Positions 1,692-48,911 of a stretch of 64,000 bases of DNA are shown here, in pieces. Numbering within the stretch: the stretch's first letter is position 1; every line of letters begins with the position of its first letter. The stretch lies in sequence record LR756500.1; one strand, given 5' to 3'. Under the pieces are notes generated by a model that worked only from the letters and a program-made list of their open reading frames with translations, ran no database searches and was not told where the DNA came from. A program made the translations under genes and the position numbers.

Positions 1692-1764
1692 AAAATTTTA
1701 AATTTATTATTTTATGGAAAATTAATATTTTGTTTAAATAAAATTTAATTAATTTAATCTTTAT

Positions 1765-1862
1765 TTCAACATTAAATATTTTTTTAATTTTTTTAACATT
1801 GATTGTCCTAAGGCATTCATATTTAATTAATTATATATTATTATTTATATATTTATGTTAGC
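1765..1862 (+). repeat. 98-bp inverted repeat copy A; candidate attI-like site ending in GTTAGC
   Basis: Reverse complement matches 13029-13126 at 96/98 positions; ends at the first cassette core site. Confidence 0.85.
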
Positions 1863-1869
1863 AACAATA

Positions 1870-2238
1870 CTACAAACCGTACTTCGATTTAAGTTTTTCT
1901 AATTGCTCCAACTCAATCTTTTTAATTCTTTCCTTTTCTTGTCTATCTCGTTCATCTTGTCTTTTTTGGTATTCAATTTCTTCTTGTTCACACGCTTGTT
2001 TGTATTCATTTTCAGAAATTAGACCCAAATCAACAAGTGGATGGTCGGTATTATCTTTACTATATTGGTTTATATTCACTTCATTTTTTGTGTATCCAAA
2101 TCCTTCTGTAATATCATTAACAACCAATACTGTAAATGTGTTATCTGTAAATTTTAACCATAAATCGCCACAATCTAATTTCAAATCAGAGATTGTTTTT
2201 CCTTTCAATTCATTGATATTCTGTATTTCATTTTTCAT
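1870..2238 (-). CDS. cassette 1 hypothetical protein
   Basis: ORF track; flanked by gttagcaacaatac / gtactgttgctaac. Confidence 0.75.
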   Translation of the reverse strand: MKNEIQNINELKGKTISDLKLDCGDLWLKFTDNTFTVLVVNDITEGFGYTKNEVNINQYSKDNTDHPLVDLGLISENEYKQACEQEEIEYQKRQDERDRQEKERIKKIELEQLEKLKSKYGL

Positions 2239-2272
2239 ATTATATAAATTAATCGTTTATAATCCGTACTGT

Positions 2273-2380
2273 TGCTAACACATTGTATATGTCGGTTTTG
2301 CCAATTGGCTTTTGTGCTTTTGTGCTTTGACTGAGAGTATGTGCGTGGCAAAACCGAACACATACAACCATTCGTTATAA
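2273..2380 (+). other. attC-like site S1
   Basis: TGCTAAC..GTTATAA; stem tgtatatgtcggttttgcca / tggcaaaaccgaacacataca with bulged bases. Confidence 0.8.
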
Positions 2381-2395
2381 GTAATAAAATAAAAA

Positions 2396-2560
2396 CTACT
2401 TACTACTATTAATATCCTTAATCAAAATTTGAATTTCTTCATTTTTATTTTCTAACTCTTTTTCAAATGCTTTTTGAAACTCAAACTTTTGTTCTTCACT
2501 TAACTCATTCAAATTTTGAATGTTAGTTTGTCTAATTTCTGCTTTAATTTTCTTTTCCAT
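2396..2560 (-). CDS. 54-aa cassette protein (MEKKIKAEIRQ...), absent from ORF track
   Basis: Translated by hand; fills the cassette between S1 and S2. Confidence 0.65.
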   Translation of the reverse strand: MEKKIKAEIRQTNIQNLNELSEEQKFEFQKAFEKELENKNEEIQILIKDINSSK

Positions 2561-2586
2561 AATTTTACTGTTTTTATTTTACATAC

Positions 2587-2708
2587 TTATAACAACAAAT
2601 ATAAAACATTGCTGATGTAGTTTCTATTTATATTATACGTTTAATTTCAAGTTTTGTTTCATTTATTTACATTCATGTTGCAACTTTTTATATTTGTAAT
2701 CGTTATAG
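2587..2708 (+). other. attC-like site S2
   Basis: TTATAAC..GTTATAG; stem acaaatataaaa..ttgc / gcaac..tttttatatttgt. Confidence 0.8.
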
Positions 2709-2717
2709 ATAATAAAA

Positions 2718-2936
2718 TTAAAAATAGTCATGACTATCTATAAATAACTCCTTATATGTTTCATCAGTAAAAGAAAATCCTCTACCATCAACCGTCATTT
2801 CTACAACTTGCATCACTTTTAAGTAATTAATTATTGTGTCAAGTTCGTCTTCTAATTCTTTACCTATTTTAAACATACTCATAGCTGCCATTATCTCACC
2901 AAGTCTTTCAATATTTTCTTTTACTTTCTCATCCAT
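2718..2936 (-). CDS. cassette hypothetical protein
   Basis: ORF track; bounded by gttatagata / tatctataac. Confidence 0.7.
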   Translation of the reverse strand: MDEKVKENIERLGEIMAAMSMFKIGKELEDELDTIINYLKVMQVVEMTVDGRGFSFTDETYKELFIDSHDYF

Positions 2937-2964
2937 ATTAATTAGTATTTTTAATTTTACATAT

Positions 2965-3049
2965 CTATAACAACAAATATAAGAAATAAATCTTACTTTG
3001 TCTATTTTTTAATGAAAAGATTTACTTCTCATATTTGCAACCGTTAGGC
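2965..3049 (+). other. attC-like site S3
   Basis: CTATAAC..GTTAGGC; stem caaatataagaaataaatc / gatttacttctcatatttg. Confidence 0.8.
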
Positions 3050-3053
3050 ATAA

Positions 3054-3245
3054 TTATACTCTACCACTAAGGTAGTATTCTATTTCACTCTTACTAAAAT
3101 CATCGGGCTTGTTTTTATAGTACTCCCTTAATTTTCCTTCGTGAACACCTTGTTCAAATGCCCATTTCATATCATCTAATGAATAACTACGCCTAACAAA
3201 GTATAAACGTAATGTTTTCAGTTTTTCAATCAATCTTTTTATCAT
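3054..3245 (-). CDS. cassette protein starting inside the S4 loop
   Basis: ORF track; LYFVRRS is encoded by the att arm. Confidence 0.7.
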   Translation of the reverse strand: MIKRLIEKLKTLRLYFVRRSYSLDDMKWAFEQGVHEGKLREYYKNKPDDFSKSEIEYYLSGRV

Positions 3246-3310
3246 ATTATTAAATTTTGTATTTCAAATTAAGTTCAGTTAAACACTACGTTTATACTCA
3301 ACTGTTATGG
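3191..3310 (+). other. attC-like site S4
   Basis: GCCTAAC..GTTATGG; stem agtataaacgta / tacgtttatact. Confidence 0.8.
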
Positions 3311-3311
3311 T

Positions 3312-3485
3312 TCATGCTAATCGCACAATTTGACGTTCATCTACTTGTGAAAAACAATTTTCATTATATGGTTGTCCATCGTACCAAAATGAACTACAGT
3401 CCCATCTCGCAACATTCCATCCTTCGTAACTAAAATTATTAGGGCTAAATAAGTATACCCAATAGTAACCTTCTTTTCTTTCCAT
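3312..3485 (-). CDS. 57-aa Trp-rich cassette protein (MERKEGYYWV...)
   Basis: Translated by hand; preferred over the overlapping track ORF 3341-3628. Confidence 0.65.
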   Translation of the reverse strand: MERKEGYYWVYLFSPNNFSYEGWNVARWDCSSFWYDGQPYNENCFSQVDERQIVRLA

Positions 3486-3531
3486 TTTATTTTTATTTTA
3501 AGTTTAACAATCTGATTAATAAAGCACGAAA

Positions 3532-3624
3532 CCATAACATTTGCTATATGTAACACGGCTGAAAAGTCCGTACTATTTTGAGAATGTCTGCTATGCCGTG
3601 CTACACATATCATTTTCGTTATGA
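3532..3624 (+). other. attC-like site S5
   Basis: CCATAAC..GTTATGA; stem tatgtaacacggc / gccgtgctacacata. Confidence 0.8.
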
Positions 3625-3810
3625 ACAATGCTTAACGTCTGCCAACGCTATGTCATGTCCACATTTTTTACATTTACCAACCATAATTAAGTGGTCGAAA
3701 GCATTGTTCATAACACCAAATAAATGAAATTTCTCTATTTCATCTATTGTCGGTAGTGCTTTTATTGTTACTTCTATACCACTTGGCAATTTTACTTTCA
3801 TATTTTTCAT
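3619..3810 (-). CDS. cassette protein reading through S6; CKKC motif
   Basis: ORF track; stop is the TAA of the core site; start uncertain. Confidence 0.45.
   Translation of the reverse strand: MKNMKVKLPSGIEVTIKALPTIDEIEKFHLFGVMNNAFDHLIMVGKCKKCGHDIALADVKHCS
3708..3758 (+). other. short degenerate attC-like site S6 (GTT changed to GGT)
   Basis: TCATAAC; stem taaatgaaat / atttcatcta; GGTAGTG. Confidence 0.55.
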
Positions 3811-3919
3811 AGTCTATACCCATAGAACAAACCTTTCGCTTCGCAACACTAACATCAGATATATTCAATTTTTTATTTGTATTATCCAAAGTTTCTTCTA
3901 AAATTTTACTCTTTTCCAT
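3740..3919 (-). CDS. 59-aa cassette protein (MEKSKILEETLDNTNKKLNISDVSVA...)
   Basis: Translated by hand; starts in the S7 loop. Confidence 0.65.
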   Translation of the reverse strand: MEKSKILEETLDNTNKKLNISDVSVAKRKVCSMGIDYEKYESKIAKWYRSNNKSTTDNR

Positions 3920-3964
3920 TTTATTAAATTTTGTGTTAGAACTACGTATATGTAATCATTATAG
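3847..3964 (+). other. degenerate attC-like site S7 (GTT changed to ATT)
   Basis: CACTAAC..ATTATAG; weak arm pairing. Confidence 0.55.
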
Positions 3965-3968
3965 CCAA

Positions 3969-4319
3969 TTAAAGCACTGAATCATAATTGCTGCCTCTAT
4001 CATCATAATCCCATTTAGAATCAAGCTCATAATATTCTTTTTTTGATTGTTGGTATTCGATTCCTTTTTGCAATTCTTTAATTTGAGAATTAAGTTTATC
4101 TATTTTATTTTGCCTTTGCTCTGAAATGTATTTTTGTGCATCATTAACTGTTTTGAAAAATTTGTCGGAAGTCATAGATAAGCATATTCTCCAATTATAC
4201 TCCGTACCAGCACTACGCAAAGACCTGACAAATGCGTAACTATCGGTTAATTTGACGCAATCTCTTTCCCATATTCTAACTAAATCATCCTTTACAATAT
4301 AAACTTTAAAAAACTCCAT
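3969..4319 (-). CDS. cassette hypothetical protein
   Basis: ORF track; between S7 and S8. Confidence 0.7.
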   Translation of the reverse strand: MEFFKVYIVKDDLVRIWERDCVKLTDSYAFVRSLRSAGTEYNWRICLSMTSDKFFKTVNDAQKYISEQRQNKIDKLNSQIKELQKGIEYQQSKKEYYELDSKWDYDDRGSNYDSVL

Positions 4320-4337
4320 ATCTATAAAATTAACTGA

Positions 4338-4467
4338 CTATAACCCGTGGTATGGTTAGTTGCCGTGTTAGTACTAAATTTAAGCGTTACTACCCGCTTG
4401 TAATTTTCTGTAATTTGATAGGAAAGTAGCCCGCAATCGGCAACTAACCATACAACCAACGTTATGA
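4338..4467 (+). other. attC-like site S8
   Basis: CTATAAC..GTTATGA; perfect 16-bp stem gtatggttagttgccg / cggcaactaaccatac. Confidence 0.85.
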
Positions 4468-4473
4468 TTAATT

Positions 4474-4653
4474 TTACTCAACCACTTCAAAGTCACCAAC
4501 ATTAATTGGGTGATATACACCCAACCCCTGACATATTGTAAATGTTCCATCTTCATTAAATCCTTGATATGGCTCATCCTCTTCAAATATATCACCACTT
4601 TTAAATGTTGTCATATACCCCTCATAATCTTTTAGTAATTTAATTTTTTTCAT
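4474..4653 (-). CDS. 59-aa cassette protein (MKKIKLLKDYEGY...)
   Basis: Translated by hand; preferred over the track ORF 4380-4598. Confidence 0.65.
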   Translation of the reverse strand: MKKIKLLKDYEGYMTTFKSGDIFEEDEPYQGFNEDGTFTICQGLGVYHPINVGDFEVVE

Positions 4654-4679
4654 ATTTTAATATTTAAGTAAAAAACTAA

Positions 4680-4773
4680 CCATAACAAGGTGTATAAAAC
4701 ATAACCTAATTACAAATTTTAAATTAACCACGGAACTATAATAGGTTATGTTTCATACACCTAACCGTTAGCG
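4680..4773 (+). other. attC-like site S9
   Basis: CCATAAC..GTTAGCG; stem aggtgtataaaacataaccta / taggttatgtttcatacacct. Confidence 0.85.
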
Positions 4774-4990
4774 GTAATTTAATAACAGTATTTTGAGCAT
4801 CTTCATAGCTTTCAAATATCTTATTACATCTTGGACAAGAACAACAACCGTCAACAACGGGTATAGCAAATAATTTTACTAAGTCAAATCGTAATTTTCC
4901 ACATATTTCTCCTGTCATTTTTATATAATCAAGATTATCGTTATCAATTTTTACATCACTTAATAATAAGTGTACTTCTTGTTCTGTCAT
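4736..4990 (-). CDS. cassette protein spanning the S10 arm and ending inside S9
   Basis: ORF track; FAIPVVDG and LPLTVRC are encoded by att arms. Confidence 0.6.
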   Translation of the reverse strand: MTEQEVHLLLSDVKIDNDNLDYIKMTGEICGKLRFDLVKLFAIPVVDGCCSCPRCNKIFESYEDAQNTVIKLPLTVRCMKHNLL

Positions 4991-5053
4991 ATTTATAAAT
5001 TTATTAGTTATTACTATTAATTCCGAACTGAGTATATCTGAGTGTCGTTATAT
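4849..5053 (+). other. degenerate long attC-like site S10
   Basis: CGTCAAC (degenerate)..GTTATAT. Confidence 0.45.
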
Positions 5054-5063
5054 GCAATAAAAA

Positions 5064-5198
5064 TTATTTTTTGGATATTTTATATAACATTATAAATCCT
5101 ATTAAAAAGTGATGGATGTTGTACAATTTGCCATTTCTATCAACTTCGCTACAAAAATATCCAAATCCTATTACAAATGGCAAAATCTTTATATTCAT
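5064..5198 (-). CDS. 44-aa cassette protein (MNIKILPFVIG...)
   Basis: Translated by hand; between S10 and S11. Confidence 0.5.
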   Translation of the reverse strand: MNIKILPFVIGFGYFCSEVDRNGKLYNIHHFLIGFIMLYKISKK

Positions 5199-5210
5199 AA
5201 TTTTTACAGT

Positions 5211-5340
5211 TTATAACAACAAATATAAGCAATTATTTTCATTACTTCCAAAATAAATGTTGTTTGTTAATATTAATTTTGTTCTTTTAATTAAGTTTCT
5301 ACTAATTTTACTCAAATGTATATACCTGCAGACGTTAGCT
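5211..5340 (+). other. hybrid attC-like site S11
   Basis: TTATAAC..GTTAGCT; left arm of S2/S3 type, right arm of S15 type. Confidence 0.65.
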
Positions 5341-5345
5341 GCCAT

Positions 5346-5537
5346 TTAAGGAAGCTCTGTAATAACATAGTTAATAGCCATGTTTATTTCTGTTTCAATT
5401 TTAAATCTATACCCATTAAGCTCATAAACATTTTCATCTTTCATTTTTTCTAAACTAAACTTTTGCAATAGTTCATAAATCTGCGAAAGTGTAAGATTAT
5501 TCACGTTGGCTTTTATGTTTAAGTTTATTGTCATCAT
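5346..5537 (-). CDS. cassette hypothetical protein
   Basis: ORF track; bounded by gttagctgccattt / aaatggtagctaac. Confidence 0.7.
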   Translation of the reverse strand: MMTINLNIKANVNNLTLSQIYELLQKFSLEKMKDENVYELNGYRFKIETEINMAINYVITELP

Positions 5538-5550
5538 AATAAAAAATGGT

Positions 5551-5636
5551 AGCTAACATGATATATAAGCCATACAATGTTAAGGTTTATACTAATTTGA
5601 TAGTGTCGGGTATGACTTATATACCCATTGTTAGAG
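5551..5636 (+). other. attC-like site S12
   Basis: AGCTAAC..GTTAGAG; stem tatataagccatac / gtatgacttatata. Confidence 0.8.
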
Positions 5637-5640
5637 TGCA

Positions 5641-5835
5641 TTATCTAAACACTCCTAAAAAATCTTTTAAGCAACTTTCGTTACATACGTAAAATATTTT
5701 ATTTCCCTTAAAATAACATTCTGGCACTTTCATTGCTTTATGCTTTTTAATTTGTTTTTTACAACTTTCACAATTAACGCACTCTAACAAAGTATTAGCG
5801 TTATTGCCTTTCTTGCTTTCTGATAAGTTTTCCAC
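5641..5835 (-). CDS. Cys-rich cassette protein starting in the S13 loop
   Basis: ORF track; NANTLLECV arm motif; CxxC..CxxxC. Confidence 0.65.
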   Translation of the reverse strand: MENLSESKKGNNANTLLECVNCESCKKQIKKHKAMKVPECYFKGNKIFYVCNESCLKDFLGVFR

Positions 5836-5902
5836 ATTTTATATTTTAATGTTGTTAATAATTGTTTGTGATTGCGTTAACTCCAATACTCGACCATTAG
5901 GT
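5782..5902 (+). other. degenerate attC-like site S13 (ATT core)
   Basis: CTCTAAC..ATTAGGT. Confidence 0.6.
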
Positions 5903-6091
5903 TCAATCATTAATTTGTTTTGAATCTTCTATCATATTTTTGATTCGTTCTTTGAATCTATGTTCGTATTCCTTATCAACTTCACCCAAGTCAGTTGTTT
6001 CAAGATATTTTTTAGGTAATCCTTTACCCATAGTTTCCTTGAGTTTATTTTGAAAATACTCAAGTTCTTCGTTTGTGTTTTTATTTTCCAT
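5903..6091 (-). CDS. cassette hypothetical protein
   Basis: ORF track; ATG start; between S13 and S14. Confidence 0.65.
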   Translation of the reverse strand: MENKNTNEELEYFQNKLKETMGKGLPKKYLETTDLGEVDKEYEHRFKERIKNMIEDSKQIND

Positions 6092-6133
6092 ATTTTATAT
6101 TTTTTTACAAAGGTAAAACAAATTAATGACAAA

Positions 6134-6187
6134 ACCTAACAAATGATAAACAACATTAAAACATTCGTTTATCTGCAACCGTTATAA
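6134..6187 (+). other. minimal 54-bp attC-like site S14
   Basis: ACCTAAC..GTTATAA; stem gataaac / gtttatc. Confidence 0.7.
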
Positions 6188-6197
6188 AACAGTTTGC

Positions 6198-6344
6198 TTA
6201 AAAAAGTTTTCCACATTTTATACATCTAACCAAATAAGCACCAACCTCAAACTTTTCAAATTCGTGTTTGCAAACAGATTTTATAACAGGTATATCCAAT
6301 TGCTTTTTTTGTTTTCTAAATAAACATTTTCACAATTTTTTCAT
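6198..6344 (-). pseudogene. cassette ORF with in-frame TGA at codon 5 (MKKL*KCLFRKQKKQLDIPVIKSVCKHEF...CIKCG)
   Basis: Translated by hand; TGA at 6330-6332. Confidence 0.5.
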
Positions 6345-6404
6345 CTTGTATTTCAATTTAATTTTTACTAATTTTACGCAACTATATACCTGCAGCCTTT
6401 ATAG
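6281..6404 (+). other. attC-like site S15 (TTT core)
   Basis: TTATAAC..TTTATAG; stem aggtatat..attgc / gcaactatatacct. Confidence 0.65.
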
Positions 6405-6605
6405 TGCATTAAGGAAGTCCTCAGCATCCTTCACACTAAAGCATTTTGTGAATTTACCTGTATTTTCATTCAACACTATTACAAAATCAACTGCTCCGTA
6501 ATTAAATGCCAATTTAGTTGCTTCAATATCAAACACACATAAAGCATTATACTTTGGTATTACGGGTTGACAATCTGAATATTTTTTATCTAAAATTCTT
6601 AACAT
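6399..6605 (-). CDS. cassette hypothetical protein
   Basis: ORF track; between S15 and S16. Confidence 0.65.
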   Translation of the reverse strand: MLRILDKKYSDCQPVIPKYNALCVFDIEATKLAFNYGAVDFVIVLNENTGKFTKCFSVKDAEDFLNAL

Positions 6606-6624
6606 AGTTTTAAGTATTAACTTA

Positions 6625-6719
6625 CTATAACAATGTGTATATGTAATGCAGCCAATAAGTTAATTGTAAATTGAAAGTATATGCAAGACAAACCGACATC
6701 ATACCGCCAGCCATTATAG
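6625..6719 (+). other. hybrid/degenerate attC-like site S16 (ATT core)
   Basis: CTATAAC..ATTATAG; right arm resembles S1. Confidence 0.55.
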
Positions 6720-6723
6720 CCAA

Positions 6724-6882
6724 TTAAAAAGTAACACCATTATCATATCCAACCTCTATTGATATATTTTCAATTTCAGTATTTAATATTTGTGCTATCT
6801 TTTCTTTTAGTTCGATTATCTTGGTTACATCAATCATTACATCTTTGTAAACAGAAATTGAAATTAGTTCTTTTTCATTCAT
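6724..6882 (-). CDS. 52-aa cassette protein (MNEKELISISVYKD...)
   Basis: Translated by hand. Confidence 0.55.
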   Translation of the reverse strand: MNEKELISISVYKDVMIDVTKIIELKEKIAQILNTEIENISIEVGYDNGVTF

Positions 6883-6931
6883 ATTATCTAAGCAAACATT
6901 CTCATATACTTAACCATTATAGATAATGAAA

Positions 6932-7222
6932 TTAAATATCCTTAAAAAGTCTTCTTGGTGCTACTAATCTTCTACCATCATCACATTTAATAATATATTC
7001 ACCATCAGGTTCTATAACAGTATCTAAAACATTATAAATATTACCAACTGTTATTGGAAAATTTGGGTTTGGATTTTCCGTACATAGAACTTGTTTAAGC
7101 ATAAACTTATTATTAAATGTTCCATAAATATCTGAATTAACTATTTTAATTTCACTATCTATAGCATCAGATATATGTAATTTTTCATCTTTTTTCATAA
7201 TACTATTTTTATTAGTTAACAA
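6932..7222 (-). CDS. distal cassette protein (KLHISDAIDS arm motif)
   Basis: ORF track; bounded by attatagata / tatctatagc; likely start near 7198. Confidence 0.65.
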   Translation of the reverse strand: MLTNKNSIMKKDEKLHISDAIDSEIKIVNSDIYGTFNNKFMLKQVLCTENPNPNFPITVGNIYNVLDTVIEPDGEYIIKCDDGRRLVAPRRLFKDI

Positions 7223-7228
7223 AACAAC

Positions 7229-7642
7229 TTAATACGCCTTGTTATGTTTGTACGCCCTTGTTTGATTATAGAGCATTTTCAATTCGATATGCTTTTCAAT
7301 ATCAATGTTTCTTTGTCCTATAAAATCGAGCAATCTAATAAATACGTCTGCAATTTCATCTTCAAAAGTATCCTTTACCTGAGTTCTGAAAATTTCCTCA
7401 AACTTTATCATATCGTTTTCTTTTGCTGCCAAATCTAAATCTTCTCGAATAGTTTTGCCGTCAATAATAAATTCAGCATCATCAATTTTGGCATATTGTC
7501 CTTTTCTATCAGCTTCCAAAGCCTCAGATAATTCAGAAACCATAAGCATTAATAAAGTACCTGTTTCTCTTGGTTCGTCCCAAAAACCCTTTGCCTTTGC
7601 TCTTTCATGAAAATGTTTTGCTAATTCGTTTAAATTATTCAT
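7229..7642 (-). CDS. MazG-like all-alpha NTP pyrophosphohydrolase
   Basis: LMVSELSEALEADR and EDEIADVFIRLLD motifs. Confidence 0.85.
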   Translation of the reverse strand: MNNLNELAKHFHERAKAKGFWDEPRETGTLLMLMVSELSEALEADRKGQYAKIDDAEFIIDGKTIREDLDLAAKENDMIKFEEIFRTQVKDTFEDEIADVFIRLLDFIGQRNIDIEKHIELKMLYNQTRAYKHNKAY

Positions 7643-7664
7643 ATTATTTTATCTTTTAAGTTTT

Positions 7665-8081
7665 TTAAAAATTTATTACAGACAGATCTAAATAATATTG
7701 TGGATCTGCATAGTCTTGAATTTCAGAAACTAATCCATTAAATTTCATTTTAAAATCTCTATTTATATTTATAAGGTAAACAATTCTTCCATGTGGTTTT
7801 ATGGAATACCTATCTCCTTCGATATTTTCAACTGAGCGATTTTGCATTAAAACATATCCACCAATTGTTAATGCAATATCATCAATCATTTTTTCTTTAT
7901 CCCCAATTTCTTCATGCCAAGGTATTGCAACTAAATCTAAATCTCTATTCATTGAGCCATGCACAATAATATTATATCCATATTTTAAACCTATTTCTTT
8001 TATTATTTCAAAGTAAAATGAATATAAATTTGGTTTAGCATGAATTGGTTTAATGTCTGTTATAGGATTTGTTGTATTCAA
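7665..8081 (-). CDS. conserved hypothetical protein, nucleotidyltransferase-like motif
   Basis: VHGSMNRDLDLVAIPW (GS..D.D). Confidence 0.5.
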   Translation of the reverse strand: MNTTNPITDIKPIHAKPNLYSFYFEIIKEIGLKYGYNIIVHGSMNRDLDLVAIPWHEEIGDKEKMIDDIALTIGGYVLMQNRSVENIEGDRYSIKPHGRIVYLININRDFKMKFNGLVSEIQDYADPQYYLDLSVINF

Positions 8082-8175
8082 ATATTTATTAAATAAAATT
8101 TTATTATTAAATTATATAACCAAAATTAATTATGTTTATAATTTAATCAATTTTTATATTTTTAATTTTACATAC

Positions 8176-8209
8176 TTATAACAACTATTTTTACACTTAA
8201 TCGTTAGTA
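8176..8209 (+). other. collapsed attC-like remnant
   Basis: TTATAAC..GTTAGTA with the loop deleted; ttttacatacttataacaac is identical to 2577-2596. Confidence 0.45.
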
Positions 8210-8268
8210 ACAATATAAAAATAAAGTTTGTAGAATAACCGATACAGACTCAATATTATTAAAAGAAT

Positions 8269-8700
8269 TTAAATAAAATCATATTTCATAATTATCTTAT
8301 TATCGATTTCTTTAACAACAGTCCATCCCATTTTTAAATGATATTCTTTTGCAAAAACTGTATCTAAAAATATAGTTTTATATCCTAATAATTTTGCATA
8401 TTCAAATCTTTTTTCAGTTAACATCAATCCATATCCATTACCTCTATATTCTGGTTCAACCCATAACAATAAATTCCAGGGAGATATAGTCCTATCTATT
8501 TCATTAATAGTATCAAATAATCCACAACCTATAGGTTTATCATCTATTATCAATACATAACAAACTGAATCAGATTCATTATTTAAATACCTTCTAATCT
8601 CACTTAAACTATATTCATCATCAACTTGCCAACGTTCTTTCATAATAGATGAAACATAATTAATATACATGTGAGTTAATTTTTCTATTTTAATTTCCAT
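8269..8700 (-). CDS. GNAT family N-acetyltransferase
   Basis: VEPEYRGNGYG acetyl-CoA motif; GYKTIFLDT; YHLKMGW. Confidence 0.85.
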   Translation of the reverse strand: MEIKIEKLTHMYINYVSSIMKERWQVDDEYSLSEIRRYLNNESDSVCYVLIIDDKPIGCGLFDTINEIDRTISPWNLLLWVEPEYRGNGYGLMLTEKRFEYAKLLGYKTIFLDTVFAKEYHLKMGWTVVKEIDNKIIMKYDFI

Positions 8701-10121
8701 TCAAATTTATAATTGCCTGTTCCAAAACATCTATANNNNNNNNNNNNNNNNNNNNNNNNNNNNNNNNNNNNNNNNNNNNNNNNNNNNNNNNNNNNNNNNN
8801 NNNNNNNNNNNNNNNNNNNNNNNNNNNNNNNNNNNNNNNNNNNNNNNNNNNNNNNNNNNNNNNNNNNNNNNNNNNNNNNNNNNNNNNNNNNNNNNNNNNN
8901 NNNNNNNNNNNNNNNNNNNNNNNNNNNNNNNNNNNNNNNNNNNNNNNNNNNNNNNNNNNNNNNNNNNNNNNNNNNNNNNNNNNNNNNNNNNNNNNNGGCT
9001 CCACCAACAACCGAAGTATTTAATTTATTAGCAAACCGTAAAAGCTCCCATTCATTTTCTTTAGCAACTTGATTTAAATTTTTACGTAAGGATCCGAAGG
9101 TCATTAATGATACTAACTCACCTTCATAATATAAACCTAATTTAATAGCAGCATTAGTATTGCCCTGTAAATGGTTCCTATTTAAAAATTCTCTACTATC
9201 ACCAGAATTAACGGTTTTAATTACACATTTTCTAGCATACACTTTATCAGTAGATAAATTTAATAAATTCTTTATTCTTGATTTTACTATATCTCTTTTG
9301 TTATACCAAACATCTTCCCATATATGTATTAAATTAATTCCCAATTCTTTGCATCTATTACTTTTATCTATATGATATTCTTTAGGTTTATTAAATTCAT
9401 TATGCCAATATACTCCATTATGTTCAAATGCTATATTTTTATCTTCAATATAAATATCAAGTTCTCTATTTTTTAATTCTTTTTTAGAATTAATTCTAAA
9501 TGGTTTTAAATAAATGTCTTTTATCCAATCTATTAATTCTATTTCAGAATTACTTTTTCCGTGATTAGGATTACATTTTAAACATGGATTAATATTTATA
9601 TTTATTCTTCTATATAATAATTGAGAATCTATTATTGATATACTTTTACATTCAACACATTCTATTTTTATTTTTTGTTGATCATCCCATTCTATTATTT
9701 TAATTTTATCTTTTAATTTTTCTTTAGCAAAAGGAAAATAATATTTATCTTTAAAATAATTTGATTGTGTTATATGTTGTACTCCATATCTTTTTAGAAC
9801 TGTTATTCTTGTTCTTTTTTCTTTTAAAACTATTGCACATTTTCTACTACAGCTAGAAGAATAACCAGGCATTATACCCATAAATTTAGATGAAGGTATT
9901 TTATTACCACATACTTCACATTTTGGAATTTCAGTTTTATCATGTAATGCATGATAAAGTTTTTCTTTAAAAGACGTTAATTTTAGATTATTATTTATAG
10001 AATATTTTTCTATTTCTAATAATAGATTAGGATAATTATTTTTAAAAAATTCAATTCTAGTAGTACTAGATGTAAGTTTTCCGTTTTTTATTAATATTTT
10101 ATTTAAATCATTTGATAACAT
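8685..10121 (-). CDS. Hef/Vsr-like endonuclease with Zn ribbons and a C-terminal Mom-like GNAT domain (87 codons of N)
   Basis: ELDIYI..IAFEHNGVYWH; LIHIWED; YARKC; NHLQG; WELLRFANKLNTSVVGGA. Confidence 0.7.
   Translation of the reverse strand: MLSNDLNKILIKNGKLTSSTTRIEFFKNNYPNLLLEIEKYSINNNLKLTSFKEKLYHALHDKTEIPKCEVCGNKIPSSKFMGIMPGYSSSCSRKCAIVLKEKRTRITVLKRYGVQHITQSNYFKDKYYFPFAKEKLKDKIKIIEWDDQQKIKIECVECKSISIIDSQLLYRRINININPCLKCNPNHGKSNSEIELIDWIKDIYLKPFRINSKKELKNRELDIYIEDKNIAFEHNGVYWHNEFNKPKEYHIDKSNRCKELGINLIHIWEDVWYNKRDIVKSRIKNLLNLSTDKVYARKCVIKTVNSGDSREFLNRNHLQGNTNAAIKLGLYYEGELVSLMTFGSLRKNLNQVAKENEWELLRFANKLNTSVVGGAXXXXXXXXXXXXXXXXXXXXXXXXXXXXXXXXXXXXXXXXXXXXXXXXXXXXXXXXXXXXXXXXXXXXXXXXXXXXXXXXXXXXXXXYRCFGTGNYKFEWKLK
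8736..8996. other. assembly gap or masked sequence, 261 N
   Basis: Run of N; the length preserves the reading frame. Confidence 0.95.
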
Positions 10122-10159
10122 TTAATTATATGGTTAATTATTATTATGTTTAATAAAAT

Positions 10160-11038
10160 TTAAACATAATCACCTTCCTGTATTTCAGGTAACTCTCCCA
10201 TCTTATTTCTATACAATAATGTAATCATCGGTAAATTTACCCATCTTAAATCCTTCTCAACTAATTGATTTTTAATACGTTCAAGAATGTCCCTGTCACT
10301 TCCCCGAGGTTCGCTGCGTACTGGTGAAGTAAGAAATTGCTCTCTTACATTTCTATATCTTAAATCCTTAAATTCCTTCAAATCCCAACAAAATGTTGAA
10401 TGCCAACTTTCTGTTATATGAGAAATATTATTCCCCCCTATATGTTTAACAACTCCTCTTTCTGGTCTACAATATGTATCTGTTCCTGTTTTATATCTTT
10501 TTATTATAGCTGTCGAAGAAAAGAATTTTGCTTTAGGATATCTAGTTATTGCCTTAGCCATATATTCTAGATGGTTAGGAAGCCATATATCATCGTGATC
10601 TAAACGACAAATAAAATTTACACCATCCCTTACTGCTTTATCAATAGCTATATTTGCAGCAACATCAGACCCTGAATGCCAAAGATCTGCCCCCCTGAAT
10701 CGGATCCTTTCACCTGGCAGTTCCAGATTTTCATATACGATTTTTGAGTATTCGAATGATTCAACTAAAGGCTTGATTTCATTATCACTTTCATAGTCAT
10801 CACCCATTAGATAAATTTTGTAGTTTTGGTATGATTGGTTTTTGATAGATTGAAGAGCTTCTTGTAATCTCATAGGAGTAGTACCATCGCTTCTTTTATA
10901 GGTAGCAACTATAATACCAAATCTTATATTTGTTCTGTGTTCTATTTTTTTGAATTTATCTATTTTATCCGATAAATCATTTTGTTTATTTTGATCTTCT
11001 TGATTAAAATTTTGAAAATTTTCTAATAAGGTGTCCAT
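10160..11038 (-). CDS. glycosyltransferase family 2
   Basis: IIVATY, SIKNQSYQNYKI, LDHDDIWLPNHLE (DxD). Confidence 0.88.
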   Translation of the reverse strand: MDTLLENFQNFNQEDQNKQNDLSDKIDKFKKIEHRTNIRFGIIVATYKRSDGTTPMRLQEALQSIKNQSYQNYKIYLMGDDYESDNEIKPLVESFEYSKIVYENLELPGERIRFRGADLWHSGSDVAANIAIDKAVRDGVNFICRLDHDDIWLPNHLEYMAKAITRYPKAKFFSSTAIIKRYKTGTDTYCRPERGVVKHIGGNNISHITESWHSTFCWDLKEFKDLRYRNVREQFLTSPVRSEPRGSDRDILERIKNQLVEKDLRWVNLPMITLLYRNKMGELPEIQEGDYV

Positions 11039-11054
11039 AAAAATATTATTTGAA

Positions 11055-11063
11055 TATATATTT
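11055..11063 (-). promoter_or_regulatory. candidate late promoter AAATATATA
   Basis: Same motif lies upstream of genes with head-targeting-like N-termini. Confidence 0.45.
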
Positions 11064-11082
11064 GGAATTTTAATTTTATTTT

Positions 11083-11102
11083 AAACTTTTTTATTATATT
11101 TA
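11083..11102 (+). promoter_or_regulatory. candidate early promoter (..TTATTATATTTA) driving the right cassette array
   Basis: Recurrent motif seen more than 15 times upstream of plus-strand operons. Confidence 0.6.
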
Positions 11103-11202
11103 AATTTAATAATATTTAGTTATATGAATCAAAATTTAAAAATATTAATAAAATGAGAACAATAAAGGCACAGAAGACTTAATTACTGGTATAATTATTG
11201 AA

Positions 11203-11358
11203 ATGAAAAACGAAGACAACTTTGAAAGAAAAGCTGCACAGCGAATAATCGAAGCACTAACAGATGAAAATAATTTGAATATACCCCCAGTTATCGTTTC
11301 AATTTGCGATGGTCTTTTGTTTGAATGTACTGATAGAGAAACAATACATAACGAATGA
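11203..11358 (+). CDS. 51-aa protein with arm motif NLNIPPVIVS
   Basis: Translated by hand; half att site GTTATCG at 11290. Confidence 0.5.
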   Translation: MKNEDNFERKAAQRIIEALTDENNLNIPPVIVSICDGLLFECTDRETIHNE

Positions 11359-11479
11359 TGCGTTTATTCTCGTTGCCGTATTAGGAGCAGAAATTATTAA
11401 CCATAAAATAAACACAATATGAAAAAAGGAACTTCAAATAAGCAGAAAGCAGGCAATAGAATTAAACGCAATGTTATAA
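11346..11479 (-). other. attC-like site R1
   Basis: ACATAACG..GTTATAA; stem tgcgtttattctcgttgcc / ggcaatagaattaaacgca. Confidence 0.8.
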
Positions 11480-11646
11480 AATTGTTGCCCGACCGGAGAA
11501 TTTATGATGAATACACATTTATAATTGGAAGTATGCAACACGGAACATCCTACATGGGTAAATCGGACGAAACTATAAAACACCACGACAATATAATCGC
11601 ATGGCTTAAAAAACGTAGAGAGGAGTTTAAGGGCAATGTTTTATAA
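11419..11646 (+). CDS. cassette protein starting in the R1 loop
   Basis: ORF track; stop is the TAA of the R2 core. Confidence 0.7.
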   Translation: MKKGTSNKQKAGNRIKRNVIKLLPDRRIYDEYTFIIGSMQHGTSYMGKSDETIKHHDNIIAWLKKRREEFKGNVL

Positions 11647-11773
11647 CGGACGGCGGTTGGCTTTCGTTGCCGATGCTCGATTAACGACAAATGATTATTA
11701 ATAGTAAAAATTTAAAATTATGCAGACAGATTCTAAAAACCAAATAGGCAATGAAGCTAATACCATGTTATGT
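11641..11773 (-). other. attC-like site R2
   Basis: TTATAACG..GTTATGT; stem ttggctttcgttgcc / ggcaatgaagctaa. Confidence 0.75.
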
Positions 11774-11947
11774 GAAGTGTATTTTGTAAAAAAAGGTAAA
11801 AAGTTTATGAAAGGACATGGATATAGCACATTAAAAGGATATAAATTTAGTTGGACTTTCAATAAAAACGAAGCAAGAAAAATGGAATATAGCACAGCAA
11901 ATAGTTTAGCAATTTCAAGCGGTGGTGTATTGAAACAACAACTATAA
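11720..11947 (+). CDS. cassette protein starting in the R2 loop
   Basis: ORF track; GNEANTMLCEV arm motif. Confidence 0.7.
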   Translation: MQTDSKNQIGNEANTMLCEVYFVKKGKKFMKGHGYSTLKGYKFSWTFNKNEARKMEYSTANSLAISSGGVLKQQL

Positions 11948-11994
11948 ATGGTCAATTAGTAGAAATTCCACGCTACGACCCTCTTTATTATTGT

Positions 11995-12109
11995 GGCTAA
12001 CGGTTGCAAATATAAAACGTTGCAACATGAATGTAATTAAATGAAACAAAACTTGAAAAAATGCTCGAATAACCACGGATGCCCAACTGTTTTATACCAT
12101 ATGTTAGCG
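11995..12109 (-). other. attC-like site R3
   Basis: GGCTAACG..GTTAGCG; first ~60 bp nearly identical to the reverse complement of the S2 right half. Confidence 0.75.
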
Positions 12110-12145
12110 GTAGTGATTTTTTAACTTATTAATATTTAACGATTT

Positions 12146-13033
12146 ATGAAAACAAAAAGATTTGATAGTTCAGAAGGTAATGTTTGGAAATATGTATTTG
12201 ACTTTGAAAATGCAGTTGCCGAAGCGGTACTTTACAAATATGAAAACTTTTACAAAAGGACTGTACTTTGCGTGAGTGTGCAAAGTGGATGCCCTGTTGG
12301 TTGCAAATTTTGCGGAACTGGCAAAAAGTTTATTAGAAACCTTACAAACTTAGAAATAGTTGCACAGGTTAAACATTGCTTAAAAGACATGAATATTGAA
12401 AATGTTAATTCGGCTAGTGATCGTTTCCAAATAATGTTTATGAGTATGGGTGAACCTACTTTAAATATTGATAATGTAATAACGGCAATAAAGGATTTAA
12501 ACAACTTATATCCAAATGCTGAATTACTTATTTCAACTATGGGGGCAAAAAACAATACCGCTTTTGAAAAACTGTTAAAAGTAAGTATTGAAATACAAAA
12601 GGTTGGTTTGCAATTTTCAGTACATGAAGCATTTGAAGAAAAAAGAAACCAATTAATATCATTTAAAAATAAATTGAATTTACGTGAAATGCGTGATTTT
12701 GGCATTGAGTGGAATAGGCAAACAAAACGCCCTGTATATGTGAATTATTGCATTGGAGAAACAAACCAAAGCAATGAAGAGATGGATAGGCTTAAAGACT
12801 TATTTAGCCCTGCTCTTTTCAATTTTACATTTTCGGTTATTTGCTCTTCTGATGAAAACATGAAAGATAAAGGATATAGAGAACTGAACAAGATAAACAC
12901 AATTACTTCATCATTTGTTGAATGTGGTTATAATGTTCGAGTTTTCGACCCTGCTGGTCAAGATGATATTGGGGGCGGGTGCGGACAATTATGGTATGTA
13001 CAAAACTGGATGCGTGACCATCATTACCGCTAA
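12146..13033 (+). CDS. rlmN: RlmN/Cfr-family radical SAM RNA methyltransferase, short form, cassette-borne
   Basis: LCVSVQSGCPVGCKFC, MSMGEP, QFSVH, DIGGGCGQL. Confidence 0.85.
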   Translation: MKTKRFDSSEGNVWKYVFDFENAVAEAVLYKYENFYKRTVLCVSVQSGCPVGCKFCGTGKKFIRNLTNLEIVAQVKHCLKDMNIENVNSASDRFQIMFMSMGEPTLNIDNVITAIKDLNNLYPNAELLISTMGAKNNTAFEKLLKVSIEIQKVGLQFSVHEAFEEKRNQLISFKNKLNLREMRDFGIEWNRQTKRPVYVNYCIGETNQSNEEMDRLKDLFSPALFNFTFSVICSSDENMKDKGYRELNKINTITSSFVECGYNVRVFDPAGQDDIGGGCGQLWYVQNWMRDHHYR

Positions 13034-13126
13034 CATAAATATATAAATAATAATATATAATTAATTAAATATGAATGCCTTAGGACAATCAATGTTAATA
13101 AAATTTAAAAAATATTTAATGTTGAA
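13029..13126 (-). repeat. 98-bp inverted repeat copy B; candidate attI-like site
   Basis: 96/98 match to the reverse complement of 1765-1862. Confidence 0.85.
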
Positions 13127-13150
13127 AAATTATTTAATTTTATAAAATAA

Positions 13151-13801
13151 ATGGAATATAACGATAAAAATGGATTAGAATTAATAGCTGAATTAGCTAA
13201 AGTTAGTACTGATAAGCTAATGAATTTAACTATTTTAATACTAAGTAGTAATAAATTGACTTCTATACCAAAAGAGATAGGATTACTTACTAATTTAAGA
13301 GAATTACGTTTATCCAATAATGAATTAACATCTGTACCAAAAGAGATAGGAAATTTGGTAAATTTACAACATTTACATTTAAATAGTAATAAATTAACTT
13401 CTATACCATTAGAAATATTTAATCTTATAAAATTAACTAAATTATTATTATATAGTAATAAATTGACTTCTATACCAAAAGAGATAGGAAATTTAATAAA
13501 TTTACAGCGTTTATTTTTAAGTTATAATGCATTGACTTCATTACCTAAAGAGATAGGAAATTTGGTAAATTTATGTGAATTACTATATACAAATACTAAG
13601 ATGGTTTCAATACCTATTGAGTTAGTTAAGTTAAATGTTTTTCCAAAGTTAGATTTATCAGAATTAACTCTGCCGTTATGGGCTGAATTATTTCAAGAAG
13701 ATAAATTTAAAGTTATTAAGCATAAAGATTTTCCAAAAGATTTAAGAAATCATCCATGGTTTATTGATGTAGCTTATGCAGATGATTTTGGACTTATTTA
13801 A
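13151..13801 (+). CDS. leucine-rich repeat protein
   Basis: About six 23-aa repeats LxLxxNxLTSIPKEIGNLxNL; C-terminus ADDFGLI. Confidence 0.9.
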   Translation: MEYNDKNGLELIAELAKVSTDKLMNLTILILSSNKLTSIPKEIGLLTNLRELRLSNNELTSVPKEIGNLVNLQHLHLNSNKLTSIPLEIFNLIKLTKLLLYSNKLTSIPKEIGNLINLQRLFLSYNALTSLPKEIGNLVNLCELLYTNTKMVSIPIELVKLNVFPKLDLSELTLPLWAELFQEDKFKVIKHKDFPKDLRNHPWFIDVAYADDFGLI

Positions 13802-48721: not shown

Positions 48722-48911
48722 AAAAGATTTAATTCAAATTTCTGGATTAATTATTTGCTTTTTAATAGGATATCTTTCTAGTAATAAATCTATAATAAAA
48801 GGAATTATAATGTCTTTATGTTATGGATTGTTAATGTTTTTGATAATATTTATTATAAAATTATACCAAAGAAAACAAAAACGTGATTTTTTCAAAAATA
48901 TAAAATACTAA
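48678..48911 (+). CDS. small two-TM protein
   Basis: Hydrophobic ORF. Confidence 0.55.
   Translation: MNIKYTEKKKYLITKKDLIQISGLIICFLIGYLSSNKSIIKGIIMSLCYGLLMFLIIFIIKLYQRKQKRDFFKNIKY

Follow-up and report, generated by a model that had tools for sequence, protein, structure and literature searches.

How do small accessory genes come to be stacked, one hairpin after another, at a single site in the genome of a very large phage? The question is raised by the 462-kb genome of an uncultured phage (LR756500.1), of which a 64,000-nucleotide stretch (the window) was analysed. The region spanning 1743-13148 of the window contains two mirror-image arrays of gene cassettes separated by integron-type hairpin sites, although no integrase lies in the window.

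Anatomy of the two inverted arrays

A sequence-only reading had described about 20 attC-like hairpins in two inward-facing arrays, and this observation holds. Approximately 16 well-formed AAC...GTT hairpin sites were counted, together with several decayed ones. All 11 complementary core pairs that had been listed as cassette boundaries are present. Thus, 1857/2279 has 9 of 10 matches beyond the GTTA/TAAC core, 3618/3714 is fully complementary over the 10 positions scored, and 5334/5557, 5630/5788 and 12103/13034 each have 9 of 10. Each gene module is bounded by its own complementary ends of 9-14 bp. Cognate ends are more complementary than non-cognate ends. The R' extension against the next R'' extension gives a mean of 4.9 of 8 matches, compared with 2.9 of 8 for non-cognate combinations, and none of 100,000 random assignments reached the observed sum. 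The one exception named by the sequence-only reading, 11767 against 12001, is real (2 of 8 matches). The hairpins are concentrated in the region. At −12 kcal or lower, 8 AAC...GTT hairpins lie inside 1700-13200 and 1 lies in the other 52 kb of the window, while across the 429-kb genome copy 10 of 13 hits at −11 kcal or lower are found here. Cassette regions have a GC content of 27-29%, compared with 21-25% for the backbone.

Several details of the earlier description require correction. The two outermost ‘hairpins' fold weakly (−4 to −5 kcal) and are better read as attI-like ends. Several inner sites are decayed, with cores that read ATTA or TTTA or with no stem, and the cores are xTAAC and GTTAx rather than strictly RYYYAAC and GTTRRRY. 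The run of Ns lies in the central segment, not in the arrays, inside a homing-endonuclease gene. Both flanks match one homologue, through the N-terminal 374 aa before the gap and a 16-aa C-terminal tail after it, and the two sides therefore belong to one gene; about 95-105 codons are expected in the gap against 87 N-codons.

Features of the cassette arrays and the segment between them (positions in the window; kcal values are predicted folding energies; L1-L15 and R1-R3 are sites of this locus, whereas L followed by three digits denotes other loci in which a copy or homologue was found)
Position	Strand	Feature	Observations
1743..1862	.	Left arm of the 120-nt inverted repeat that bounds the whole element; contains the attI-like end (about 1847-1868: an AT-rich run, then GTTA and the extension of the first cassette)	Arms 92% complementary; in an attI matrix test ranks 2nd-3rd of 598 TAAC positions but scores only 3.3 bits against a training median of 14; contig depth 39 against 24.5 for unique sequence, which fits two copies
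13029..13148	.	Right arm of the 120-nt inverted repeat, with the mirror-image attI-like end (core at 13031-13034)	Same repeat comparison and attI matrix test
2276..2377	+	Hairpin site L1 (TAAC to GTTA), long GC-containing stem	−13.2 kcal
2590..2705	+	Hairpin site L2, class B; part of its body is shared with right-array site 11998-12106	−13.9 kcal; 71-nt inverted match; homologues in 13 other sites
2968..3046	+	Hairpin site L3, class A, the commonest class in other phage contigs	−11.1 kcal; 17 distinct copies aligned, stems conserved, one compensatory pair; homology with other copies ends at 3046/3047
3194..3307	+	Hairpin site L4	−15.4 kcal; 93% identical to a copy in L058
3535..3621	+	Hairpin site L5	−11.7 kcal
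3618..3714	+	97-bp unit without a gene of its own, bounded by a perfect 14-bp inverted pair	ORF 3619-3810 reads through it
3850..3961	+	Decayed site L6 (R' core reads ATTA, weak stem)	Homologues in L090, L047 and L013
4341..4464	+	Hairpin site L7, the strongest stem in the window	−22.0 kcal; 91% identical to a copy in L100
4683..4770	+	Hairpin site L8	−18.3 kcal
5025..5050	+	Minimal site L9 (GAAC to GTTA, almost no stem)	
5214..5337	+	Hairpin site L10, class D, partly decayed 3' arm	Homologues in about 10 loci
5554..5633	+	Hairpin site L11	−10.5 kcal
5785..5879	+	Weak site L12	
6137..6184	+	Short-class hairpin site L13 (48 nt)	Homologues in at least 10 loci
6181..6287	+	107-bp ORF-less unit bounded by a 9-bp inverted pair	
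6284..6401	+	Site L14, decayed R' core (TTTA)	
6628..6716	+	Site L15, decayed R' core (ATTA) and weak stem	Further ATTATAG cores at 6916 and 7265
8179..8206	+	Stemless remnant site at the inner end of the left array	30-nt inverted match to 11119-11148
1870..8081	-	Left-array cassette genes, all on the minus strand: 1870-2238, 2396-2560, 2718-2936, 3312-3485, 3969-4319, 4474-4653, 4736-4990, 5064-5198, 5346-5537, 5641-5835, 5903-6091, 6399-6605, 6724-6882, 6932-7222, 7229-7642 (MazG-like pyrophosphatase), 7665-8081	phrog_33653 for 1870-2238; pyrophosphatase PHROGs for 7229-7642; most of the others have no family; the 2396-2560 module is 95% identical to a copy in L079
8207..11118	-	Central non-array segment: GNAT acetyltransferase 8269-8700, homing endonuclease 8685-10121 (interrupted by the N gap 8736-8996), family-2 glycosyltransferase 10160-11038	Backbone-like GC of about 20%
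11349..11476	-	Right-array hairpin site R1 (structural top strand is the minus strand)	−14.0 kcal
11644..11770	-	Right-array hairpin site R2	−11.2 kcal; its arm overlaps the listed start of ORF 11720-11947, so the real start is probably at 11808 (read directly from the sequence)
11998..12106	-	Right-array hairpin site R3, class B	−9.9 kcal; 71-nt inverted match with L2
11203..13033	+	Right-array cassette genes, all on the plus strand: 11203-11358, 11419-11646, 11720-11947, 12146-13033 (radical SAM protein)	

A linked recombinase in other large phages

The same hairpin classes occur in many unrelated large, AT-rich phage contigs of IMG/VR, each time with different flanks. Of 30 array-bearing records, 13 hold one tyrosine recombinase of about 270 aa next to the array. 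Over 79 recombinase loci there are 393 sites in 502 kb upstream of the gene compared with 23 in 664 kb downstream, a 22-fold difference in density, and 46 of the 51 loci with at least 3 kb of upstream sequence have at least 3 sites. An attI-like motif was seen in 8 of 8 systems read by eye, and in 37 of 75 when a strict pattern was applied, at a fixed distance from the start codon. The recombinase, which is 265-268 aa in length, is not a bona fide IntI. It lacks the IntI-specific insertion and matches TIGR02249 with 148-159 bits, against a cut-off of 265, in two stretches. It is closest to Xer proteins, matching XerA (4A8E) at 156 bits in one stretch, with NF040815 as its best family.

Comparison of near-identical phages shows that the system is mobile in relatives. 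Two loci, L254 and L255, are 100% identical through the recombinase and attI and differ from the TAAC core outward, while L265, L266 and L267 share cassettes at 99.9-100% identity in a different order, with one cassette duplicated at the attI-proximal position. Among same-class hairpins, homology breaks sharply at GTTA but decays gradually on the TAAC side. In 191 modules from other arrays, cognate ends match at 5.6 of 8 positions against 2.9 of 8 for non-cognate ends; 65% of these modules have at least 6 of 8 cognate matches compared with 3.8% of non-cognate pairs. A spacer asymmetry of 3-4 nt is seen in nearly all of 389 sites. Linkage between a gene and its hairpin gave a mixed result on the only 4 homologous module pairs that could be compared. 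The genes are antisense to the structural top strand in 204 modules and sense in 6. By contrast, arrays associated with bacterial relatives of the recombinase have sense cassettes (26 against 0).

Interpretation of the arrays

We interpret the region, with fairly high confidence, as a recombinase-less double cassette array, an orphaned copy of an integron-like gene-capture platform that is native to many large, AT-rich phages. In complete copies of the platform the recombinase sits 55-65 nt from a conserved attI-like site (TAAC followed by an alternating A/T run), which is followed by a run of cassettes. Each cassette comprises a 10-12 bp end beginning GTTA, one or a few small genes lying antisense to the structural top strand, and the complementary end finishing in TAAC, followed by an imperfect hairpin with a variable tip and an internal loop 3 nt longer on the 3' arm. 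By analogy with integrons, the recombinase would recombine folded hairpin sites at the G|TTA core, release a cassette circle in which the two cassette ends pair into the R box, and re-insert it at the attI-like site. The anatomy, the linkage of recombinase and array, the sharp homology breaks at the cores and the cassette reordering between near-identical phages are demonstrated by the analysis, whereas the single-stranded folding of the sites, the strand that is cut and the circular intermediate are inferred. Folding in particular rests on conserved pairing, and within class A only one compensatory pair was seen.

The interpretation given by the sequence-only reading is therefore only partly supported. 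It was correct that the architecture is integron-like, with AAC/GTT cores, cassettes whose two ends form a cognate R box and genes antisense to the structural top strand, that no integrase lies in the window and that the genome is that of a huge phage. The assignment of the sites to IntI recombinases is not supported as stated, as the enzyme that accompanies them in other phages is Xer/IntI-like. The proposal that the phage captures and shuffles accessory genes is likewise not shown for this phage. The whole record contains no tyrosine recombinase domain (PF00589) and holds, elsewhere in the genome, only an N-terminal remnant of the recombinase from which the catalytic domain is deleted. The contigs of the source metagenome show a single arrangement, although contigs cannot reveal rare circles, and no close relative of this phage was found in which cassette order could be compared directly. 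Both arrays begin at degenerate attI-like outer ends, although this assignment is weak. These arrays are thus probably frozen, unless a co-infecting relative supplies the enzyme in trans. Finally, the sequence-only reading knew of clusters of attC sites lacking an integrase (CALINs) in bacteria but of no phage-resident double array. The belief that phage-resident CALINs had not been described is outdated, as 17 such clusters in phages, including divergent attC sites in a Polaribacter phage, were reported by Qi et al. 2023 (PMC9892861). No description of the recombinase-linked, inverted-cassette phage platform was found in the library searched.

Alternative explanations and related systems

The alternative that survives best, although unlikely, is that the recombinase acts on duplex sites, as Xer does on dif or on the pdif modules of Acinetobacter plasmids, such that each half of a ‘hairpin' is a double-stranded core site and the hairpin merely reflects two inverted copies flanking a short spacer module. 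The proximity of the enzyme to Xer proteins is consistent with this view, as are the observations that the R''-spacer-L'' half of class A is itself an inverted repeat around an 8-bp centre and that homology breaks occur at both cores in some comparisons. However, stems extend 10-20 bp beyond the boxes with sequences that are unique to each site yet still pair, the arm asymmetry recurs in nearly all sites, the module-specific complementarity of the cassette ends has no role in a duplex mechanism, and the attI-like partner is a single non-hairpin site.

It is also unlikely that these are ordinary bacterial integron cassettes, a CALIN captured from the host chromosome and serviced by a host IntI, which is close to the earlier view of attC sites processed by IntI. 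The sites share with attC the AAC/GTT cores, the asymmetric hairpin and the cognate R box, IntI1 recombines attC sites from phages (PMC9892861), and bacterial relatives of the recombinase have similar sites. Conversely, the hairpin classes recur in viral contigs next to a phage-encoded recombinase without the IntI insertion, the antisense cassettes do not have the bacterial layout, and the closest bacterial recombinases are only 42-53% identical.

More doubtful still are promoter-terminator regulatory cassettes of the PeSL kind, as in T4-type phages, shuffled by homologous recombination between repeated intergenic motifs with no dedicated recombinase. Small ORFan genes are indeed separated by repeated stem-loop elements in a plastic region of a large phage, some hairpin classes contain a TAnnTTTG box pointing at the next gene, and conserved leaders of about 35 nt are shared by unrelated modules. 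The promoter-like box, however, occurs in only 41 of 270 sites, in this genome the sites lie at one locus and are not dispersed, and the one-sided density of sites at a specific recombinase gene, the conserved attI-like site with its exact breakpoints and the complementary ends of each module also argue against this view. That the hairpins are only transcription terminators or other RNA structures, with end complementarity arising by chance, is contradicted by the permutation test, the cognate matches in other arrays and the recombinase linkage, although the hairpins do lie between co-oriented genes and the absence of a matching Rfam family means that nothing contradicts an RNA role.

Among known systems, class 1 and sedentary chromosomal integrons (IntI with attI and attC cassettes) likewise place a tyrosine recombinase next to an attI-type site and an array of cassettes. 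The sites are imperfect hairpins with conserved AAC/GTT triplets, an unpaired asymmetric spacer and a variable tip; the two ends of each cassette form the R box, the crossover (inferred here) is at G|TT, and new or reshuffled cassettes appear at the attI-proximal position. The cassette gene pool is huge, mostly ORFan and attached to a few site classes, as with the VCR sites of Vibrio. The phage platform differs in the shorter enzyme lacking the IntI-specific helical insertion, in the antisense genes, which a Pc-type promoter cannot therefore express, in an R box of about 11-12 bp instead of 7, and in its carriage by lytic-looking huge phages; in this window, in addition, the enzyme is absent and there are two mirror-image arrays. 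The phage CALINs (PMC9892861) are also clusters of attC-type sites without an integrase, and include a Flavobacteriia (Polaribacter) phage with divergent sites. They have as few as two predicted sites, were interpreted as bacterial integron fragments, and no phage-encoded cognate recombinase or attI was described, whereas here there are about 20 sites, a shared phage-wide pool of site classes and a dedicated recombinase in relatives. By blastn, no cultured phage shares these hairpins.

A possible parallel is offered by Treponema-type integrons, in which the integrase is co-oriented with the cassettes. Bacterial arrays found here next to Xer-like recombinases (Ekhidna, Desulfitobacterium and OW818690.1) are accompanied by the same recombinase subfamily (42-50% identity), which also lacks the IntI insertion, and have the same site geometry (short 5' spacer, long 3' spacer) and cognate ends. 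In these bacteria, however, the array lies downstream of the recombinase and the genes are sense to the top strand, while in phages the array lies upstream. PeSL mobile regulatory cassettes of T4-type phages (PMC2839356, PMC4122927) also involve small accessory genes in a plastic region of a large phage, separated by repeated stem-loop motifs that mediate modular shuffling, but PeSLs are promoter-terminator motifs thought to recombine by homology, in contrast to the core-precise breakpoints, module-specific end pairing and linked tyrosine recombinase seen here. Xer/dif systems and the pdif modules of Acinetobacter plasmids similarly combine a Xer-family enzyme with modules bounded by inversely oriented sites; pdif sites are 28-bp duplex sites recognized by the host XerC/D, whereas the sites described here are hairpins of 45-125 nt with an attI partner and their own phage enzyme.

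The double array and its genomic setting

The window forms the last 64 kb of LR756500.1, an unannotated 462,018-bp 'uncultured phage' assembly, and an IMG/VR copy of the genome (G001, 429 kb, 96% complete) shares 99% of its sampled words. Its DNA occurs in a groundwater metagenome. GC content is 21-25% in the backbone and 27-29% in the two cassette regions. Backbone genes in the window include ClpP, a sigma-70 factor, a polymerase-beta-like protein and the two genes that flank the element.

The observation made in the sequence-only reading, that small genes are bounded by complementary core pairs and separated by hairpins, holds, as every core pair that it listed is present. Ends of the same gene module are far more complementary than ends of different modules (4.9 against 2.9 of 8 positions), and no random assignment in 100,000 reached the observed sum. 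In 191 modules from other arrays the corresponding values are 5.6 against 2.9 of 8. Strong AAC...GTT hairpins are concentrated in the element, which contains eight of the nine in the window and 10 of the 13 in the whole 429-kb genome copy. Sites were detected with our own scan for cores plus pairing energy, rather than with the published attC model. On this basis 13 reasonably formed sites were counted in the left array and 3 in the right array, in addition to several decayed sites in which the cores read ATTA or TTTA or the stem is missing. The two outermost 'hairpins' fold poorly and are better read as attI-like ends. One hairpin class is shared between the two arrays.

The N run does not touch the arrays but lies in the central, backbone-like segment, inside a homing-endonuclease gene (phrog_3339, E = 3e-72). 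The 374 aa before the gap and the 16-aa tail after it both match a 560-aa homologue in locus L251, and about 95-105 codons are expected to be missing, compared with 87 N-codons. The two sides therefore belong to one gene, as judged from these matches and not from a continuous reading frame.

Coordinates of features in the window, elsewhere in LR756500.1 and in related loci
Record	Coordinates	Strand	Feature
Window	1743-1862		Arm of the 120-nt inverted repeat that bounds the element
Window	13029-13148		Arm of the 120-nt inverted repeat that bounds the element
Window	1762-1860, 4886-5266, 5336-5602 and 5744-5963		Regions nearly identical to short contigs in two soil metagenomes (runs X3 and X4)
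Window	1862 to 2645		Single 'joint' seen in contigs of the source sample
Window	3618-3714		97-bp unit bounded by perfect 14-bp inverted ends
Window	6181-6287		107-bp unit bounded by perfect 9-bp inverted ends
Window	8685-10121	minus	Free-standing homing endonuclease between the two arrays, interrupted by the assembly gap
Window	8685-8700		Overlap of the homing endonuclease with the start of the GNAT gene
Window	8736-8996		N run (assembly gap)
Window	12146-13033	plus	Outermost right-hand cassette gene, encoding a 295-aa radical SAM protein
Window	13151-13801 and 14352-15500		Backbone genes flanking the element: a leucine-rich-repeat protein and a lysine-2,3-aminomutase-like radical SAM enzyme, both uncommon in phages
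LR756500.1, outside the window	48599-48811 (locus L253)	minus	Remnant of the array recombinase
L251 against L047	12752-16059 against 3366-4105		Conserved gene interrupted by three insertions of 0.4-1.2 kb

A recombinase and an attI-like site linked to arrays in other phages

A 17-nt pattern derived from three window sites found more than 118 places in IMG/VR, about half of which are true homologues of the window's hairpin classes. These sit in unrelated contigs of 25-35% GC and up to 480 kb, each time with different flanking sequence. Homology among copies of one class stops sharply after GTTA and decays gradually on the TAAC side. In 13 of 30 such records there is exactly one tyrosine recombinase of about 270 aa, which abuts the array; as IMG/VR contigs are fragments, absence of the recombinase from the others means little. 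Searching with an alignment of eight of these proteins gave 251 viral loci. Over the 79 that were analysed there are 393 sites in 502 kb upstream of the gene compared with 23 in 664 kb downstream, a 22-fold difference, and 46 of 51 loci with enough upstream sequence carry at least 3 sites. A conserved motif, TAAC followed by an alternating A/T run, lies 55-65 nt upstream of the start codon, and the first gene module follows it directly with no hairpin in between, which is the layout of an attI site.

Evidence of mobility was obtained by comparing related phage systems. L254 and L255, two recombinase loci from different metagenomes, are 100% identical through the recombinase and the attI-like motif and become unrelated exactly at the TAAC core. 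Three further loci, L265, L266 and L267, have recombinases that are 97% identical and share cassettes at 99.9-100% identity, but arranged differently. The distal pair B-A is common to L265 and L267, while the attI-proximal cassettes differ, and in L265 a second copy of cassette B sits at the attI-proximal position. Block A ends exactly at its TAAC core and is followed by different hairpins in the two phages. This is the pattern integron biology predicts, namely insertion at attI, and excision and re-insertion of resident cassettes. It places the crossover at G|TTA on the structural top strand, and the cassette is therefore the GTTA end, then the gene or genes, then the TAAC end, then the hairpin. 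A crossover on the TAAC side of the structural top strand was considered first, because integron rules place the extra bases opposite the cut triplet, but was rejected in view of the attI junctions, the L265/L267 comparison and the finding that bacterial relatives have the same spacer geometry with sense genes.

Other comparisons between loci were less informative. Linkage between gene and hairpin across contigs rested on only 4 homologous module pairs, and the result was mixed. Indels between L047 and L251 resembled cassette gain and loss, but are intein- or intron-like insertions in a conserved gene that is otherwise 95-97% identical; they look like inteins or introns with endonuclease genes.

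Comparison with integrons and other modular systems

The recombinase has the SAM-like N-terminal domain (PF13495) and the catalytic domain (PF00589), but scores below the cut-offs of the integron-integrase models (TIGR02249, 148-159 bits against a cut-off of 265), which it matches in two pieces that skip the IntI insertion. By sequence it lies between XerA (4A8E) and IntI4 (2A3V), the latter also being matched in two stretches, and no insertion appears in a sequence alignment (A2). The insertion is regarded as specific to IntI and needed for DNA recognition (bioRxiv 10.1101/542381), and the enzyme thus does not satisfy the definition of an IntI-family integrase. Metagenome sources name these proteins only 'XerD', and at least 6,900 protein clusters match at E <= 1e-40.

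The sites, by contrast, have the attributes of attC sites by our scan and folds, namely imperfect hairpins with R''/R' cores holding AAC/GTT, L boxes, an unpaired central spacer and a variable terminal structure, and the complementarity of each cassette's ends is the signature of circularization. The internal loop is 3-4 nt longer on the 3' arm in nearly all of 389 sites. The R box is about 11-12 bp, with conserved A/T at its outer end. In the 191 modules, from loci L006-L251, and in the window pairs, the conserved A at position +7 after GTTA is usually not complementary to its cognate partner (at most 7 of 8 matches), which suggests a conserved mismatch at the outer edge of the R box.

Typical integron cassettes are mostly promoterless, with the gene on the top strand and expressed from Pc. 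This is not the arrangement in the phage loci, where genes are antisense to the structural top strand in 204 modules and sense in 6, and all the cassette genes of the window are antisense. The top strand is opposite to the recombinase strand at 384 of 400 sites. Recombinase and cassette genes are therefore all co-oriented, and transcription runs toward the recombinase. Bacterial relatives of the enzyme (42-50% identity, mostly Bacteroidota, also Desulfitobacterium and others) also lack the insertion and have the same site geometry, but there the arrays lie downstream and the genes are sense (26 against 0 modules, and 87 sites downstream against 17 upstream). This comparison fixes which strand is the 'top' strand, and confirms the remark in the sequence-only reading that the genes are antisense. 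These canonical sense arrays occur in L411 (Ekhidna sp.), L384 (Desulfitobacterium sp. Sab5), L408 (OW818690.1) and about 20 other bacterial loci among L333-L412, and standard integron finders would probably score them as integrase-less clusters. The relatives of the recombinase are also the only indication of a host, suggesting Bacteroidota.

Of the other systems considered, the double array fits structurally with a CALIN (a cluster of at least two attC sites lying close together and lacking an integron integrase), having about 16 well-formed sites and no recombinase in the genome. In Xer/dif (pdif) modules the chromosomal XerC/D act on 28-bp duplex sites with two 11-bp arms and a 6-bp centre; here the enzyme is Xer-like, while the sites are long hairpins with site-specific stems. 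PeSL regulatory cassettes (PMC2839356, PMC4122927), which combine an early promoter with a terminator stem-loop, are dispersed in hyperplastic regions and recombine by homology without a dedicated recombinase, do not fit the data, as the genome has a single locus, there is recombinase linkage, the breaks are core-precise, and a promoter-like Bacteroidota TAnnTTTG box inside the L box, an idea that was downgraded, is present in only 41 of 270 sites. Scans for Rfam families and tRNAs found nothing.

The interpretation in the sequence-only reading, in which the phage captures and shuffles genes through attC sites processed by IntI recombinases, is thus supported only in part. It is somewhat more likely than not that large phages carry their own class of integron, consisting of a compact Xer-like integrase without the IntI insertion, an attI site, and arrays of 'inverted' cassettes in which the hairpin site lies upstream of an antisense gene. 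In this view the phages would draw on a vast shared pool of small ORFan genes, plausibly host-takeover or anti-defence genes, the system being found at hundreds of loci in IMG/VR and in thousands of protein clusters annotated only as XerD, and the window would be a decayed, duplicated example of it. The arrays themselves are real, whereas strand choice, the folding of the sites, the use of folded rather than duplex DNA and the cassette circles are inferred.

Integrons are regarded as bacterial, and recently archaeal, gene-capture platforms. Qi et al. 2023 (PMC9892861) screened 10,705 phage genomes, reporting 3 complete integrons in temperate phages and 17 small clusters of attC sites without an integrase, and showed that IntI1 recombines phage attC sites. 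The attC rules applied here are those of Nivina et al. 2016 (PMC5027507). Full-text searches found no description of a phage-encoded Xer-like recombinase with attI and inverted cassettes, although most subscription journals lay outside their reach and prior description cannot be excluded. A phage-encoded platform of this kind would give a concrete mechanism for the rapid turnover of small accessory genes in huge phages, with its own minimal recombinase, a recognizable attI, a huge cassette pool (198 modules sampled, only 4 homologous pairs) and comparative evidence of recent reshuffling. It would also extend the definition of an integron integrase beyond the IntI insertion, which bears on how strand choice and recognition of folded DNA evolved, and it offers a compact recombinase-and-site pair amenable to direct testing. 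For this particular window the practical message is narrower: the arrays are real, but they are orphaned.

State of the locus and cassette content

Neither copy of the genome has a tyrosine recombinase domain (no PF00589 at E <= 1 in G001 or LR756500.1), and no serine recombinase and no credible IS200/IS605-type (Y1) transposase is present. The N-terminal remnant at locus L253 matches residues 34-109 of the array recombinases at 46% identity and is followed by a few C-terminal residues, the catalytic domain having been deleted. Two small co-oriented ORFs with decayed core-like motifs lie upstream of it. The double array begins on both sides with a degenerate attI-like end inside the inverted repeat, although the resemblance is weak, scoring 3.3 bits against a median of 14 and ranking 2-3 of 598 TAAC positions. 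The possibility that the sequence to the left of the attI-like end is the 5' stub of a deleted recombinase gene was examined, but no similarity supports this. The arrays run inward toward a backbone-like centre holding an acetyltransferase, the homing endonuclease and a glycosyltransferase, and many inner sites are decayed.

Comparative data gave no evidence of mobility at this locus. Relatives of the phage were sought through ClpP and the lysine-aminomutase-like gene in order to compare cassette order, but the best matches are 59-67% identical at the protein level with no synteny. Logan contigs of the source groundwater sample, the only form in which these data exist, show a single arrangement, and the one 'joint' is explained by the inverted-repeat copies of the right array. 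Other contigs in the same sample carry the same hairpin classes, indicating that array-bearing relatives co-occur there. We conclude that the locus is a fossil or orphan of the platform; that it is possibly still a substrate in trans is an inference. The soil-metagenome contigs are nearly identical to single cassettes and to the attI-like end, and a close relative, or the same cassettes, therefore exists outside the groundwater source.

Most cassette genes encode proteins of 45-140 aa without a family, the exceptions being a MazG-like pyrophosphatase, a radical SAM protein, a DUF7244 protein and a member of phrog_33653. One module is 95% identical to a copy in locus L079, with different hairpins on both sides and an exact break at the GTTA core. 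The 97- and 107-bp units are too small for a gene and may be empty cassettes or remnants of deletions. The radical SAM protein, by contrast, is unusually large for these arrays; it has a CxxxCxxC motif and belongs to a PHROG family with no known function.
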